This document shows, in pieces, positions 4,407 through 53,398 of a stretch of DNA of 64,000 nucleotides. Positions within the stretch are counted from its first letter, which is position 1; the number at the start of each line of letters is the position of its first letter. The notes under the pieces were generated by a model that saw only the letters and a program-made list of their open reading frames with translations, was not told where the DNA came from and did no database searches. Location: sequence record KU521356.1; one strand, 5' to 3'. Made by a program: the position numbers and the translations under genes.

Positions 4407-4556
4407 ATGAAAGCATTCGCACTAGTGGTTATTGGTTTGACTTTTGGTGGACTGTTTGTAAACGCTAAGTTTGAAGAGCAAACTATTTCTAATGAAACTG
4501 TTATCCTCGGTCATCGTATCGGTCCCAATGGTCAAGAAATGCTCGTAACTAAATAG
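4407..4556 (+). CDS. small (49 aa) signal-peptide-like protein, absent from the ORF track
   Basis: MKAFALVVIGLTFGGLFVNAKFEEQTISNETVILGHRIGPNGQEMLVTK; first gene after the promoter cassette, AAGGGA SD. Confidence 0.75.
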   Translation: MKAFALVVIGLTFGGLFVNAKFEEQTISNETVILGHRIGPNGQEMLVTK

Positions 4557-4566
4557 AGAAATAAAA

Positions 4567-4908
4567 ATGGAAAAGTCCGTAGCAGTTAAAGTAATCGACA
4601 ACATGTGCCGTCCGAATATCGTTGCTCGCATGAATGGTAAACTGGTCTACCATGCTCGTAATGTAAAAATAGTAGAAGGTAAGGATCTATGGCCGAACCG
4701 CACTGACGTAGATGATGTTCGTGTACTGGTCGGTGAAGCCTTCCGTAACGGTGAATGGGTACCCATGCGCAGTTCTAGCCTGGTTAACGTAGATGCTGTT
4801 ACCGGTGTATACGAAACCCTCAACTCTGTTTACATTGCTCCGGATCTTCTGGGAAGTCTCTCGGTGGGTCCTGATATCTTCAATGATGATGCAACTTTGA
4901 AAGGATAA
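4567..4908 (+). CDS. hypothetical early protein
   Basis: 113 aa, host-like codon usage. Confidence 0.8.
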   Translation: MEKSVAVKVIDNMCRPNIVARMNGKLVYHARNVKIVEGKDLWPNRTDVDDVRVLVGEAFRNGEWVPMRSSSLVNVDAVTGVYETLNSVYIAPDLLGSLSVGPDIFNDDATLKG

Positions 4909-4913
4909 TCAAT

Positions 4914-5312
4914 ATGAACTTCATCAAAGAAAACGCACTTGGTCTTGGTCTTATTGCACTGGCAGTTGGCGCAACAGCCGTTGCTGCCATCCTCGCGGTC
5001 AAAGCTACCGTAAAGGAAGACGGTCAGGCTGTAGCCGAACAGATCGAAAGCAGTATCTCTGATATTCTTATCGATAAGATCTCCACCTACCGTAACAGTG
5101 AACAACATCGCAAGCTGGTAAATCATCTTCGTCGAGATCACGAGTTGGATGTCGCAGAGTTCATCTCACGGACCCAATTGGACATCGCGCTCAACATTCT
5201 TCCAGAGGTAGAAGTACTTCTGGAATCTCATCGTGATCAGCTGACCGTGGAAGAGTTCGATCGACTGGTTGCAAATCTCCAACATTTCGTGCAACGGATC
5301 ATCACTAAGTGA
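4914..5312 (+). CDS. hypothetical protein with N-terminal membrane anchor
   Basis: 132 aa; ALGLGLIALAVGATAVAAILAV hydrophobic helix; AAGGA SD. Confidence 0.8.
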   Translation: MNFIKENALGLGLIALAVGATAVAAILAVKATVKEDGQAVAEQIESSISDILIDKISTYRNSEQHRKLVNHLRRDHELDVAEFISRTQLDIALNILPEVEVLLESHRDQLTVEEFDRLVANLQHFVQRIITK

Positions 5313-32747: not shown

Positions 32748-32986
32748 GAAATTCATTACTTTAATAGACTGTATTTCTCTTATTTATCTCTTTTCTTCTA
32801 AAAAGAAAATTATATAAATAGTATATTATGTGGGGGGGACCCTTTGGGGGGGTCCCATATAATATTCCTTATTATTAGAGAAGGGGTATAACCCATCCTT
32901 AGTTCGAGAATCTATTACTTTTAGTAATAAGGGATTGGCTATAAAAAGCCAATACCGTTTAATTTGAAAATTGGAAAAAATGAAAA

Positions 32987-47262: not shown

Positions 47263-49143
47263 ATGGCTGTTAACGAAAACGAAATCGGCACCGTTCAAAC
47301 TCAAGCTACTGCTCCTGCTCCGCAACCCACTGCACAGCGTCAAGCTCAACGTCCTACTGGCGCGCCTGGGTCTACTACTGGCATTAACCATCTAATGCGT
47401 CGCTCTGGTCGACTAGATGGCTCTGATGCTCGTTCAGCAGATGCCCTACAAGTATTCACTAAAGTAAAAGAAGAAGCAATCCGCCATCAGGACCTACCTG
47501 ATGACTTCGATATCCATCGTTTCGATCGTGATGCGCAACAAGTTGGTATGGCTGGTCTACTCATTGTTAAACTAGCTAAAGATATCAATGGTTCCATGAA
47601 GGCATTCGTTCGTACTCTAGTACTCGATAACCTACCTGGTACTCGCATCCGTCCCCGTACCCACAAAATCAACAATGGTCTAACTGATGACATCATTGAA
47701 GAGAAGGTACTACCGCGTGATGTATTCACTGCTCAATACTGGAGCAAGATCGGCGAGTTCCTACGGAACCGTTACAACATCCCTGGTCTAGAAGTACTAT
47801 CTGCCGGTCCACGTGCAGTGTATGCTGACTTCGACTTCAAAGATGAACTAGCTGTTAAGAACCTACTAGTTGAATCCGTTAATATCTGTGAAGATGCTAT
47901 TGCGCGTCGTAACAATGAGACTCCGTTCTCTATTGCGACCCACATCAAAGCAGAAAACGAACAGCTTACCTGCAATCTAGACTACAATGGTATTCCGGTT
48001 AAAGATAGCTGTGGTAATCCGATCCGTTCTGACCTGGTCATCTCCACTAGCCGTGGTAAGAAAACCAACGTACCTGAGAACGAGTTCTATGATACCGATA
48101 GCCAGCTAAACCAAGTTAGTCTATTCGTAGATCTACATTGGACTCCGACCACTGGCCAGCAACAAGGCATGTTTGGCGTAACTCTACCTGGTGCAGTTCT
48201 ACCTCCGCAGTTCACTCCTTACATCGTTATTACTGACGTTCGTAAGGCGTCCTGGATCCAAGCATGGACTCTAGAAATGTGGCTGTTCGCGCTTGGTAAC
48301 GCGTATCGTGCAACTGCATCTCAGGCATGGGCTCGTACTCTAATGCCGAAGATCGCTACTAGTAAGATGCGTGATATTGGTGCACTTGGTTATTACTCAG
48401 AGCTAGGTAAAGCGATTGAAACTCGCACCGAAGCATTCATGGCAGACGACAGCAACTTCGTAATGCTAATGAACAAGATGGTTAACCAGAACCCTGCATT
48501 CCAGATCGATATCGATCCAATGGGCGACAACTCAGCTATTGAGCAAGTCATCCTAGATGCAGCTGGTGGCGTAAACCAAGCTCGTGCAGTTAGCCTGATC
48601 TTCCAAGCTCTAACTAACCTATACGGCACTGATTTCCGTCAGTTCTATAACCTAGCTGAAGCTGGTCCGATTATCTTTGACAACCATCATGAAGTAGACC
48701 TCGGTCACTACACTGATGAGCATGGCGAACTAAGCGACCGTCGTGATCTTGACGTTCTAGGTGCCATGAACATGTCTGAAGGTAATGACCAAGAGTGGAA
48801 GACCTGGTATGCTACTCAGGTAGGTAATGACCACATTGTGCGTCGTATGAATAACAGTAAAGGCTTCGACAAGATGTACCTAGGTAACGTTACCTATACT
48901 GGTCGTGCTCGTCGTCTAACCTTTAACCCGAAATTCATCACCGCAATGGATGCCGCAGCAGCAGCCGCTGGTGTAACTGTAACCATGGAAAACCTAATTA
49001 CCAACTTCGGTCAACAGCGCTTCGCTGGTTACACCGGTATGGGTAACATGGCTGTTTCTGGTAGTGCACAAGTTGGTATGGCTGGCAGCATGGGTCAAAC
49101 TTACGGCGCTCCTTCCTATAATGCACCGGGTACCTGGTACTAA
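47263..49143 (+). CDS. chmA: chimallin, major phage nuclear-shell protein (gp54-like)
   Basis: 626 aa; disordered A/P/Q/T N-terminus, G/M/A-rich C-tail ending APGTWY; directly before the nvRNAP subunit, as in nucleus-forming phages. Confidence 0.9.
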
Positions 49144-49149
49144 TAGGAA

Positions 49150-49470
49150 ATACCTCGGTAGATAGGGATGTTAAATAAGTAACATCCCGATTCTAATACT
49201 GCGACCCTGGTTCACTTCGGTGATAACGGTTAGGAGTAGGTTCCGTGAAGTAATCGACTAGTGGACTTAGTCTAGGTCGACCTATCACTACACGAGGATG
49301 ATAGATCACTTAACCGAAAGGAGTTACTCAAAAGGTGACGTGTGATCAAAAACTACAATGGATGGTAAATGATACTAGTGCCGGTATGCTACAGAGAAGA
49401 GCGGAGGTTAAGCTTTGTAGATGACGCTAGGATCGGGCCAGGCTCCGTTGGTGGTCCATTGTAAAAACTG
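49150..49470 (+). ncRNA. candidate structured non-coding RNA or structured chmA 3' extension
   Basis: No ORF of 60 aa or more; at least 6 predicted helices, UUCG and GAAA tetraloops, long-range 49354-49362/49455-49463 pairing; terminator follows. Confidence 0.6.
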
Positions 49471-49475
49471 ATATA

Positions 49476-49510
49476 GCGGCTCCTTCGGGGGCCGCTTATA
49501 TCTCCTTTTT
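49476..49510 (+). terminator. intrinsic terminator
   Basis: GCGGCTCC-TTCG-GGGGCCGC followed by TTATATCTCCTTTTTTT. Confidence 0.85.
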
Positions 49511-49537
49511 TTGTTAATCGATAAATAGGAGTTTGGT

Positions 49538-50674
49538 ATGGGTCTTTATGCCAAAGTTGTTGATCATAATGAAGTTCATGATCAATTTACGGGTAAACGA
49601 ATTTATGCCAATGATTACAATACGAGTAACTCAGATGAGAAAGAAGAATTTGATAGGCATTTCTATTCTCATTTCCAAGATTCAGAAGCAATTGAAAGTA
49701 GTGTAAGCTGTGATTGTCGAGCAATCGAAGACGCACATAAACTCGGAGTAATCTGTGATATTTGTAATACTCCAGTTGTCAATACTTCTAGCCGCCCTAT
49801 CGAACCATCAATGTGGGTTCGTACACCAAAACACGTACGTAGCCTAATTAACCCACGTTTAATCATTATGCTAACCGGATATCTAGTAACTAAAGAATTC
49901 GATTTCTTAGCATATCTAACTGATACTTCTTATCGATACGATGTGGAATCTATTGGTTCTAAAGAAACACGCAGAAAAGTAGATAGGCTACTGCATCGAG
50001 GATTTGAAAGAGGATTAAATCACTTCATTGATAATTTCAATGAGATCTTCCAATTCCTACTAGATGCAAATATTATTTCTAATAATAAATCCGAATTCGC
50101 TCAATTCGTTGCTCAGAATAAAGATAAGTTATTCCCTAAATATTTACCAGTTCCTTCTAAACTCTGTTTCGTAGCAGAATCAACCACATCTGGTACTTAC
50201 TTAGATAAACCAATTGAAGCAGCAATTGATGCTACCTTAACCTTCGCTAGTATTGATGCATCATCTGTACCACTTAGTCCAATTAAAGCTCAGAATAGGA
50301 CTATGCGAGGACTAAGACTATATGGCCAGTTCTACGAGATCTACGCAAAATCACGAATTGCTCAAAAGCCTGGTCTTGCTCGGCGTCACATGTTTGGTGC
50401 TCGTCTCAACGCTACGGCACGTGCAGTAATCACTTCTATTAGTGACCCGCATGATTATGATGAACTACATATCCCTTGGGGGGTAGGTTGTCAATTATTA
50501 AAGTATCATCTAACCAATAAACTAAAAGCAAAGTTTAACATGACAACTCGTGAAGCATTCTCATTTGTATATGAGAATGTACTTCAATATAACCAAATCA
50601 TTGCAGATCTATTTAAAGAGCTAATTGCAGAAGCAGCCCCTTATAAAGGGATGGGTTGTACTTTTCACCGAAAT
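49538..50674 (+). CDS. non-virion RNA polymerase beta'-like catalytic subunit, exon 1 (379 codons)
   Basis: Zn-finger SCDC..CDIC, ARAVITS motif; ends ..CTFHRN at a U (50674). Spliced product is 488 aa. Confidence 0.9.
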
Positions 50675-51918
50675 TAATCTATTAAGTTAAAGCGCTACAG
50701 ATTCTGGGTGTGGTAACCAGGAATCTCTAATGAGGAATTATGAATGAAGAAATAAGATGGCGTAAAATACCTGGTTTCAATAATTACGAAGTCAGTGATC
50801 ATGGTCAAGTTAGGAACCTTAAAGGCGAATTAATCTCACAACACGAGAATAAGACAACTAAAGGTACTTACCTTACCGTTAACATCCACAATGATGACGG
50901 TATTAGAAAGATTCGTTATGTTCATCGTTTTGTGTGCATGGCGTTTCATGGGTTACCTGAAAACTTTAATGAGTTGGACGTTAACCACAAAGATACCATT
51001 AAGCATAATAATCATTACCTTAACCTAGAGTGGGAAACTCGTAGCGGTAATGTTAAGCATGCATTTATAACCGGTGCCAATAAACATGCACTCGCTGTTA
51101 AATGTACAAACATTCTGACTGGTGAAGTAAATAACTTCATCTCGATGAAAGAAGTAGCCGAGTTCCTAGAGCTTGGTCACAATAAAGGGTTACATGTCGT
51201 ATTGGGTCATTTAGTTAAACCATTCAGAGGTAAATATGTATTCGAAGTAAGTGGGGATTATCACCCACAGAAGCGTAAGAATGCAATTGAAGTTTATTGC
51301 ATAGACTTCAAGACCAACACCTTTGGACGATATGTAAACCTAACGCAGTTACAACTTAGAACCGGGTTAATTAAAGGGTCAGTGCAGGACATTTTAAAGA
51401 AACCAGATCTAAGATTATTCAACGGTGTTGTTATCTGTAGGGTCGATGATAAGGAACGGCTATTCGAATACGTTTCTAACCTAACCCAAGAAATGGTTAA
51501 CAAATCCATTGATGATTACAATAGATACAAAGCGCGTAAAGAGAAGCTACATACCACCTAAGCAATTAGTGTAGCGACTTAACTTAATATGGGTTTCCTT
51601 GTATCAGAAATGATACTCGACAAAACTTCTTGAATTGCTGGAACAACTCGTTAGGTCAGTTAGCTACAATAGTTCCGAAAGGTTCTATGAATGCTTAAGA
51701 ATAACTGAATAGAGTCAATCAGCAGCTAAGATCCTAACCCGAAAGGTATGGATAAAGTTCAACGACTAGTGCATTGGCACGTAGGGTCCAAGTGGACTCG
51801 AAGTGGGAAGCACCTTACTGGGTAAAGCCAAAGGTGAAGATATAGTCTCAACGTCTAGCGAGAGCTAGAGCTGCACGTAATGGTGCGGGTTAGCCTAACG
51901 AACTAACTGAAGATATTG
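50675..51918 (+). mobile_element. group I intron 1 (1244 nt) with HNH endonuclease
   Basis: U at the 5' splice site, terminal G 51918; P/Q/R/S elements AATTGCTGGAA, AATCAGCAG, GTTCAACGACTA, AAGATATAGTCT; IGS GTTTC (51593-51597) pairs exon GAAAT; removal restores RN|PTLQR. Confidence 0.9.
50740..51561 (+). CDS. intron-encoded NUMOD4-HNH homing endonuclease 1
   Basis: 273 aa; WRKIPGFNNYEVSDHGQVRN (NUMOD4), YVHRFVCMAF, DVNHKDTIKHNNHYLNLEW; GAGGA SD. Confidence 0.92.
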   Translation: MNEEIRWRKIPGFNNYEVSDHGQVRNLKGELISQHENKTTKGTYLTVNIHNDDGIRKIRYVHRFVCMAFHGLPENFNELDVNHKDTIKHNNHYLNLEWETRSGNVKHAFITGANKHALAVKCTNILTGEVNNFISMKEVAEFLELGHNKGLHVVLGHLVKPFRGKYVFEVSGDYHPQKRKNAIEVYCIDFKTNTFGRYVNLTQLQLRTGLIKGSVQDILKKPDLRLFNGVVICRVDDKERLFEYVSNLTQEMVNKSIDDYNRYKARKEKLHTT

Positions 51919-52026: not shown

Positions 52027-53398
52027 GGACAATTGAATAACTAAATAAGGGTAAAAACAATGGAACAAAACGGAGTAGTGTCCGTCTTTGATCCGGCTTC
52101 ATTTAAAATTGAATGGCGGGATATTCCTGGATACTCAGCATATGAAGCTAGTAACCTAGGAACAATTCGTCATAAGCGGTTAAATAGAATATGTAATTTC
52201 TTCCTTACTAAAACATCGATTGGGACATATCTCAATATTGGTGCAAAAAATGATGAAAAAACATCTAAGAGTAAGGGAGTTCATATATTAATCTGTTTAG
52301 CTTTCCATGGTCCATCACCTGGACCAGATTATGAAGTCAATCATAAAGACGGCAACAAACATAATAATCTACCATCTAATTTGGAGTGGATGACTCGTGG
52401 TGAAAACTTAGAACATGCTTACAAAAATGGATTAAGAAAAGAAAATAGACGAGTAATTGCAACTGATGTTACCACTGGTGAAAAGACTACTTATTACTCG
52501 ATGAGTGAACTTGCTCGGGCATTAGGAGTTAATAAAAATACGGTTTGGGTTATTATACGTGATCATAAGACTAAGCCGTATAGAAATAGATTCACATTTG
52601 AATTTATTACCGGTGAGACTAAGATTGCTGATCGAGATAGTACCAAGACAGTTTATGTTTTAGACTATAAGACTAAGACATTACATGTGTTTCATAACTT
52701 AGCTGAAATGGAACTTGCACTAGGTACTAAACGTAATAAAGCCTATTACCATCTAGTTAGAGGTAGTAAAGAAATCATGGATGGTTTGGTATTCTCATAT
52801 ACCGCCAATCCTGAAGATTTCCCTAAATACACTCAAAAAGAAATTGAAGCCTCATTTGGAAAACCTAGTAATGGAAAAGGTACTCCAATTGAAGTAACTG
52901 ACACCATCTTGAACACTACCAAAGTGTATCCGAGTATTCCACACTTTGCAAGAGATGTCGGTATTAAGCATCCGAATACTGTTCGAAGAGCAATCTTTGA
53001 AAAGAATGGGGTGCTTGATAAATACCTTATTAAGTTAATCAAGTCTAGTTCCCCCAATGAGTAATCGTTGGGTTGAGTTCTCTCTAATTGCTGGGATATC
53101 CTGTTAAACTAATCTACCACTGCGAGTCGAAAGACAAAGCCAAGGTTTGAAAAAGATTAGGTAGGGCCAATCAGCAGCCAAGCTCCGTAACATTCCATTT
53201 AGGAATAGGAGAAGGTTCAACGACTATTACGGTATCAGGTGCACCGGTCCTAGAAATAGGATGTAGGGTCAAGTGACTCGAAATGGGAGACACCCCACTC
53301 CGAAAGGAAGGGTGAAGATATAGTCTGGTCTTCTAGCGAGAGCTAGAGCTGCACGTAATGGTGCGGGTATCAATTAACGACTGATACTGAACAATACG
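52027..53398 (+). mobile_element. group I intron 2 (1372 nt) with HNH endonuclease
   Basis: Exon ends in U (52026), terminal G 53398; AATTGCTGGGA, AATCAGCAG, GTTCAACGACTA, AAGATATAGTCT; IGS GTTGGGT (53067-53073) pairs GCCTAAT; removal restores N|ADFDGD. Confidence 0.93.
52060..53064 (+). CDS. intron-encoded NUMOD4-HNH homing endonuclease 2
   Basis: 334 aa; EWRDIPGYSAYEASNLGTIR, GVHILICLAF, EVNHKDGNKHNNLPSNLEW; NUMOD1/IENR1-like C-terminal segments (TTYYSMSELARALGV, VYPSIPHFARDVGI). Confidence 0.93.
   Translation: MEQNGVVSVFDPASFKIEWRDIPGYSAYEASNLGTIRHKRLNRICNFFLTKTSIGTYLNIGAKNDEKTSKSKGVHILICLAFHGPSPGPDYEVNHKDGNKHNNLPSNLEWMTRGENLEHAYKNGLRKENRRVIATDVTTGEKTTYYSMSELARALGVNKNTVWVIIRDHKTKPYRNRFTFEFITGETKIADRDSTKTVYVLDYKTKTLHVFHNLAEMELALGTKRNKAYYHLVRGSKEIMDGLVFSYTANPEDFPKYTQKEIEASFGKPSNGKGTPIEVTDTILNTTKVYPSIPHFARDVGIKHPNTVRRAIFEKNGVLDKYLIKLIKSSSPNE

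Follow-up and report, generated by a model that had tools for sequence, protein, structure and literature searches.

The window analyzed here, a stretch of 64 000 nucleotides (64 kb) from sequence record KU521356.1, belongs to Pseudomonas phage KTN4, a phiKZ-like phage; the region matches KTN4 at the same coordinates with 100% identity and phiKZ with 98.7-98.9%, and a phiKZ coordinate equals the window coordinate minus 1615. On the plus strand, the ORF list places chmA, the gene of the nuclear shell protein chimallin, at 47263-49143, and its product matches the Pfam family PF25677 (Chimallin_Phikzvirus) with 1122.7 bits. A gap of 394 nt (49144-49537) separates it from the gp55 ORF (49538-50677, plus strand), which is the first part of the gene for the beta' subunit of the non-virion RNA polymerase (nvRNAP) and specifies the N-terminal part of that subunit; its ribosome-binding site and start codon can be read from the sequence at 49527-49540 (plus strand, ATG at 49538). 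Both chmA and orf55 were reported as essential in a published transposon study. Downstream of gp55, the nvRNAP gene region is split by two group I introns at 51575-51870 (Rfam, 87.5 bits) and 53027-53348 (74.7 bits), which are preceded or overlapped by HNH/NUMOD endonuclease ORFs (50740-51561 and 52060-53064), and the homologue in PA1C is a single uninterrupted gene of 476 aa.

The transcription of this locus has been mapped in phiKZ. In the supplement of Putzeys et al., based on ONT-cappable-seq, terminator T025 lies at 47888 (window 49503) and is typed as 'intrinsic'. The units running from promoters P026, P027 and P028 (45377-45583) to T025 carry chmA alone, the read-through units from P026 or P028 to T028 (52650) contain PHIKZ054-059, and no transcription start site (TSS) is listed between phiKZ 45583 and 49168. 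An early and a middle promoter of chmA were also described by Wicke et al. As transcripts end at window 49503 and none starts within the gap, the sequence following the chmA stop codons is the 3'UTR of chmA, with a length of about 360 nt. The preliminary description of this DNA had proposed that a folded RNA in the gap is co-transcribed with chmA, which agrees with these units. In the read-through transcripts extending from chmA through gp55 to gp59, the same element is internal and intercistronic. Because gp55 has no promoter of its own and is present in read-through units only, it is reached solely via read-through of the terminator. It has also been published that the level of chmA mRNA was unchanged when its translation was blocked, a hint of stability. 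A further published 3' end, T024, for which no terminator type is given, lies at about window 47459 (phiKZ 45844), some 200 nt inside chmA, and yields short units from the chmA promoters; it may be a site of premature termination or of processing.

The terminator itself occupies 49470-49510 (plus strand) and consists of a hairpin (49470-49502; -22.4 kcal/mol, z = -5.57) followed by seven T, so that the hairpin starts slightly upstream of position 49476, from which a U-tailed terminator had originally been described. It was missed by a simple consensus scanner, as the stem and the T run are 3 nt apart. PhiPA3, PA1C and phiHQ carry an almost identical terminator sequence, and D6 has a terminator of the same architecture. 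Three features of the UTR-derived ncRNAs described for phiKZ are found here: a position in a UTR, no TSS of its own in the published list and a 3' end at a mapped terminator.

Folding of the plus strand of the gap gave a minimum free energy of -122.4 kcal/mol (z = -3.96), which was reached by none of 100 shuffled sequences; the minus strand had a z-score of -2.93. After a spacer that follows the double stop codon of chmA (49144-49153) and is unconserved (5 of 11 columns identical between KTN4 and PA1C), the structured RNA spans approximately 310 nt on the plus strand and is composed of three independently closed domains, D1, D2 and D3, with the terminator behind them. D1 (49154-49296) is a multibranch domain with three arms in the RNAalifold consensus. 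It is 143 nt long and closed by helix P1, in which CTCG (49154-49157) pairs with CGAG (49293-49296); this helix is fully kept, with one compensatory change. Arm A (49159-49195) includes the hairpin GGGATGTTA/TAACATCCC at 49165-49188, one of several helices recognized at the outset, which is present and supported by covariation. Arm B (49197-49238) includes the UUCG-capped hairpin at 49212-49223, also noticed early, whose sequence is invariant. Arm C (49245-49288) includes the TCGAC/GTCGA helix, likewise confirmed and with one compensatory change. On the other hand, the initially proposed CTATCA/TGATAG helix was mis-paired (7 of 72 cells unpaired): CTATCAC (49282-49288) pairs with GTGAAG (49245-49250) to form helix P4, which is fully kept and shows one compensatory change.

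D2 (49304-49347, plus strand) is a three-way junction formed by the closing helix GATCAC/GTGATC, a 2-bp hairpin capped by GAAA and a 6-bp hairpin. The closing helix and the enclosed CC-GAAA-GG hairpin had been predicted correctly, and two compensatory pairs, both contributed by PhiPA3, were observed. D3 (49356-49461, plus strand) contains an 8-bp closing helix (49356-49363 with 49454-49461), a long two-part arm and a short hairpin. The closing helix had at first been placed at 49354-49362/49455-49463; its core of eight pairs is kept, with one compensatory pair. Within D3, the CTAGTG/CGCTAG helix is present and lengthened to 10 pairs, and the CTACAGAG/CTTTGTAG helix is almost invariant. The complementarity between the loops AGCGGAG and CTCCGTT, a candidate kissing pair, is also present in D3 and was invariant in all 12 aligned sequences. 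The AAAAACT linkers described on both sides of this domain are not conserved in the PA1C group.

Covariation was examined in two ways. RNAalifold analysis of a MAFFT alignment of 12 phages (seven phiKZ-like and five PA1C-like) yielded 108 consensus pairs, eight of which had compensatory double changes, and almost none were broken. We also built covariance models for D2 plus D3 (R1), D1 (R2) and D2 alone (R3), and the alignments made with these models took in PhiPA3 and phiHQ. In the D1 alignment, 98.8% of the cells of 47 pairs were paired and nine pairs had changed on both sides; the corresponding values for D2 plus D3 were 99.4%, 48 and six, and four pairs of D2 had double changes. Thus, about 99% pairing was kept over a total of 95 model pairs, and 15 pairs had compensatory double changes, in a small sample, with 9-12 distinct rows from three clades, of which the PhiPA3 rows were fitted to the model. 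The observed covariation was matched by none of 500 shuffles for D1 and none of 500 for D2 plus D3, and slid controls were only 26-46% paired, with at most one doubly changed pair. More than 10 of the listed KTN4 pairs are G-U pairs, which would be mismatches if read on the other strand, and the fold is therefore specific to the plus strand. The folded RNA of the preliminary description is thus borne out by both the plus-strand z-score and covariation, and we consider it highly probable that the gap holds a real, selected RNA structure transcribed together with chmA.

An alternative is that the gap encodes small proteins or acts as a site at the DNA level. In some automated GenBank annotations, one or two 'hypothetical proteins' are indeed placed in the gap. 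However, the ORFs of the gap are short (25-38 aa in KTN4 and 25-62 aa over the clades), their starts and lengths differ from clade to clade, some of them cross the terminator and none has a ribosome-binding site. The 50 substitutions between KTN4 and PA1C in the gap are spread over the codon phases as 18/16/16, without codon periodicity, and the indels (12 columns) are not multiples of three. We thus rejected a small protein-coding gene, and the original description of the gap as ORF-free holds in the sense that no ORF is conserved. The G-U pairs and z-scores favor one strand, which a site in duplex DNA would not show. This alternative is extremely unlikely on both counts. As to the annotated proteins, those in two extracted loci (374-481 and 627-815 in one, 374-481 and 626-814 in the other) and in other GenBank records overlap the end of chmA, the terminator or the start of gp55 and are not kept as ORFs; they are likely spurious calls. 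The gap had also been called relatively GC-rich. With a GC content of 0.44, this is true in comparison with gp55 (0.32-0.40) and not in comparison with chmA (0.43-0.50); the GC skew of the gap is strongly positive.

The pattern of sequence conservation provides further information on how the fold has been maintained. Between KTN4 and PA1C, 125 of 145 positions are identical in D1, 39 of 44 in D2, 96 of 106 in D3 and 39 of 43 in the terminator, whereas the linkers have only 3 of 8, 5 of 8 and 2 of 8 identical positions (about 43%). Domain identity between Phikzvirus and Pawinskivirus is thus 86-91%, compared with 65-70% for the flanking coding DNA, 48% for the ChmA protein and 66% for gp55. Of the alignment columns, 44% of those in linkers, 6% of those that are paired and 10% of those in loops or junctions carry a difference that is fixed between the clades of phiKZ and PA1C. 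When the 64-kb window was compared with 50 kb of PA1C, mean identity was 67% and the element was the sole stretch longer than 150 nt with an identity of at least 78%. Near-saturated linkers, well-kept domains and compensatory changes together argue for long-term purifying selection on the fold, and the conserved junctions and loops point to a tertiary fold or a bound partner rather than merely to hairpins. Apart from the element, just two stretches reached 78% in that comparison, 1963-2022 and 32759-32876. Both are short AT-rich intergenic islands resembling promoters or terminators, and the second has a long perfect hairpin and a weak overall z-score (-1.18).

We then compared the element with known RNA families using Rfam 15 (4227 models), both at the gathering score and with a permissive threshold (E <= 10) over positions 48800-49900. 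No match was found in the gap at the gathering score, and the permissive search returned only five matches, which scored 12-18 bits (below threshold), lay without exception on the minus strand and were not meaningful. Nothing was detected at E <= 1 in the PhiPA3 or phiHQ loci. The initial failure to recognize a family is therefore borne out by the covariance-model search, and the fold in the chmA 3'UTR is a new RNA family. The suggestion that it might be a ribozyme gained no support, as Rfam gave no match to a ribozyme family. Nor did the suggested export-associated and mRNA-localization roles gain support. ARAGORN found no tRNA or tmRNA in the window or in eight related loci, except for the two annotated tRNAs of Ralstonia phage RP13. 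A group I intron was also rejected: no Intron_gpI match was obtained at E <= 10, the element lies wholly between the double stop codon of chmA and the ribosome-binding site of gp55, and relatives without the element have complete chmA and gp55 genes. The two introns in the window are, like the element, structured phage RNAs of the same operon; in contrast to them, the element is situated in non-coding sequence and is accompanied by no endonuclease ORF. The ROOL and GOLLD RNAs of Rfam resemble it in being large, multi-domain, phage-linked and non-coding RNAs with conserved junctions, but they gave no covariance-model match and are not tied to a 3'UTR. They are also larger and occur mostly in other bacterial groups.

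The distribution of the element is narrow. By blastn, at least 57 Phikzvirus records matched the gap with 96-100% identity, and the PA1C/PS119XW group (Pawinskivirus) did so with 85-86%; the match was partial in phiHQ and limited to the two ends of the gap in PhiPA3. The element was found only in three genera of Pseudomonas aeruginosa jumbo phages. D2 is the sole domain common to all carriers, with R3 scores of 74.5 bits in KTN4, 70.8 in phiHQ, 70.3 in PA1C and 50.5 in PhiPA3. It occurs as a single copy in the 64-kb window, and no second copy was found there or in the gaps of other phages. PhiPA3 also has D1, which matches R2 with 43.8 bits (E 3.5e-10) and carries a 157-nt insertion in arm C, and its third domain differs, D3 being not recognizably kept. 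In phiHQ, D2 and D3 are present (R1, 183.7 bits) and the R2 search found D1 to be absent. A D2 pattern with 18 specified bases was scanned over viral, metagenome and genome collections and revealed no carriers beyond PhiPA3 and PA7; 12 matches in metagenomes and genomes were regarded as chance, as they scored at most 17 bits with the models. A chimallin-based search for the locus in IMG/VR likewise recovered PA7 only. In D6, Noxifer and pPa_SNUABM_DT01, gene order and terminator are the same as in the carriers, and the gap is just 84-92 nt without the element (essentially the terminator in D6 and Noxifer). The existence of such relatives with a terminator only implies that the element is not needed for chmA expression in general. 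The idea that the first D1 hairpin descends from an ancestral terminator of the D6 type was rejected, since the local alignment was not significant (6% of shuffles scored as well).

Other contents of the same gap were also observed. Small ORFs are present within it in 201phi2-1, Phabio and Viktualia, and one of them, gp106 of 201phi2-1 (4484-5047 of the extracted locus), weakly resembles the family of the phiKZ major capsid protein, its score of 22.8 bits being below the cut-off (27). In phiHQ (extracted locus 2694-2997), D1 is replaced by a different and very stable fold of about 300 nt, the whole gap having a z-score of -5.9. The replacement is homologous to the chmA-polymerase gap of Psa21 and to a site in phage RP13, and these three share a second, unannotated structured RNA motif (phiHQ 2852-2945, Psa21 4418-4510 and RP13 2490-2590 in the coordinates of the extracted loci) made of a pair of hairpins whose large loops are highly conserved and whose stems covary in 6 of 11 pairs. 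This motif lies in the chmA-polymerase gap in phiHQ and Psa21 and just upstream of a tRNA-Leu gene in RP13, and it has no Rfam match. Elsewhere in the RP13 extracted locus (89-164), an unannotated stretch matches the Twister-sister ribozyme (36.0 bits against a gathering score of 34, E 1.6e-4).

PA1C is closer to PhiPA3 than to phiKZ in both ChmA (65% versus 48%) and gp55 (85% versus 66%), whereas its element is close to that of phiKZ (86-91%) and far from that of PhiPA3. In addition, variants of D3 are common to W10-2, SL2, PA7 and T2P (Phikzvirus) and the PA1C group, with 101 of 106 positions identical between W10-2 and PA1C, and the D2 loop of HPP-Temi is of the phiKZ type. Incongruence between flanks and element, together with the mosaic D3 variants, indicates that, besides being under selection, the module has been swapped between lineages that infect the same host; these sequence comparisons suggest exchange of the element between co-infecting lineages. 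They could also be explained by a cassette carried as a passenger at a site of frequent recombination, whose fold is kept by a history of its own (as a once mobile or exchanged module) and is of little use to the phage. Such a cassette would account for the incongruence of the PA1C flanking proteins, for the mosaic makeup of the element (D3 variants, the HPP-Temi D2 loop and the Psa21-like replacement of D1 in phiHQ) and for the unrelated inserts occupying the same gap in other genera. Nevertheless, we consider it very unlikely, because the linkers are near saturation while the domains remain at 86-91% with compensatory changes, because no endonuclease, transposase or repeat was found at the borders of the element, and because there is no group I intron signal of the kind given by the two true introns of the window (87.5 and 74.7 bits).

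With regard to function, the position of the fold ahead of a terminator and an essential gene raises the possibility of an intercistronic regulator that sets read-through past T025 into gp55, either by insulating the terminator hairpin or by acting in cis on the polymerase or on a factor. The layout is leader-like, with a large fold, a terminator and then, 28 nt on, a ribosome-binding site and ATG; gp55 is found in read-through units only, no TSS is listed between phiKZ 45583 and 49168, and both neighboring genes are reported as essential. However, a classical antiterminator or attenuator was rejected, as the best upstream complement to the terminator arms was no better than in shuffled sequences in KTN4, PA1C, PhiPA3 and phiHQ (a fraction of 0.06-0.84 of shuffles being as good), and a riboswitch or T-box was rejected on the basis of no Rfam match. 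Moreover, PhiPA3 does not retain D3, the domain adjoining the terminator, phiHQ has another segment in place of D1, and D6, Noxifer and pPa_SNUABM_DT01 share gene order and terminator without the element. Taking these observations together, we regard control of read-through as unlikely.

A second possibility is that an RNA freed from the 3'UTR acts in trans, binding or titrating a factor that only P. aeruginosa or these phages possess: an RNA-binding protein of the host, for example, a factor associated with ribosomes, or part of a defence system. All three genera to which the carriers are confined infect P. aeruginosa, the conservation of loops and junctions comes close to that of stems, whole domains are exchanged between lineages, and UTR-derived ncRNAs are already known in phiKZ. 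Two of the latter, 3'UTR_PHIKZ298 and the 5'UTR of p40 (Gerovac et al., 2021; Putzeys et al., 2024), are candidates from the same phage and, like the element, lie in a UTR, have a terminator hairpin and no ORF, and are conserved in the genus; 3'UTR_PHIKZ298 was also first described without a TSS of its own, as is the case for the chmA element. They differ in being 90-200 nt long, with two stem-loops and discrete bands, whereas the chmA element is about 310 nt long, has three closed domains with conserved junctions and occurs in three genera. No freed species is documented for the element, no second copy or target-like complement was found, and pPa_SNUABM_DT01, a distant chimallivirus of P. aeruginosa, is without it. 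Motifs that could act as a sponge for host proteins or resemble a ribosome-binding site were rejected, since each is either hidden inside a helix or not conserved in PA1C and its relatives. A trans-acting role of this kind therefore appears distinctly unlikely.

We tentatively prefer a role as a protein-bound 3'UTR or a stable RNA derived from it, to which we give somewhat less than an even chance. The folded chmA 3'UTR would act as RNA on the plus strand, its conserved loops and junctions forming a compact fold recognized by a protein partner. Among the candidate partners, ChmC is the only one for which there are any data. Enustun et al. (2024; PMC11077065) reported ChmC eCLIP peaks between chmA (gp53) and gp54 of PhiPA3, with high coverage over short regions there, and suggested small regulatory RNAs; no boundaries, structure, family or conservation were given in that paper. 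The chmA-gp54 gap of PhiPA3 is the homologous gap and holds both D1 (43.8 bits) and D2 (50.5 bits), the PhiPA3 version differing from that of KTN4 in the insertion within D1 and in the third domain. It should be noted that ChmC binds most phage mRNAs with little specificity (PMC11077065), so the peak may reflect abundance or structure only. Thus, the link to ChmC raised in the preliminary description is consistent with peaks in the homologous gap and weakened by the low specificity of binding. Grad-seq and ONT-cappable-seq screens named other phiKZ ncRNAs and not the chmA 3'UTR element.

Under the preferred role, the element and the terminator hairpin would give the chmA message a nuclease-resistant 3' end, and the element would probably leave a stable 3'UTR-derived RNA. 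In this way it would affect the fate of the chmA/nvRNAP transcript while encoding nothing. Protection of the 3' end would require no more than a simple hairpin, and such a role leaves the conserved junctions and the three domains unexplained. The structured 3'UTRs of RNA viruses, which yield decay-resistant subgenomic RNAs, offer an analogy in their series of closed domains and possible loop-loop contacts; there is no homology, and decay in bacteria is mostly 3'-to-5' and endonucleolytic. Considered as a whole, with the real structure and the proposed role blended, we judge this explanation to be evenly balanced between right and wrong.

Our literature searches found no paper describing the element, apart from the eCLIP remark of Enustun et al. 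(PMC11077065). The present results define the boundaries and domains of an RNA previously known in print only as an unannotated ChmC eCLIP peak, and provide covariance models of it. It is also conceivable, though quite unlikely, that the element founds a new class of large functional RNAs, in which the freed RNA and ChmC or another shell-associated protein form a particle. If so, this particle would organize mRNA handling at the phage nucleus or blunt the host response, and a single system would draw on the exchangeable domains and on the second covarying motif (that of phiHQ, Psa21 and RP13) as its alternative modules. More generally, chmA is the key early gene of nucleus-forming jumbo phages, for which phiKZ is the model, and the stretch adjoining it is better conserved than chmA and the polymerase gene, as an RNA fold, which suggests a previously unrecognized RNA component in the early program of these phages. 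In addition, the gap between the two genes points to a hot spot at which structured RNA modules are swapped between co-infecting phages.
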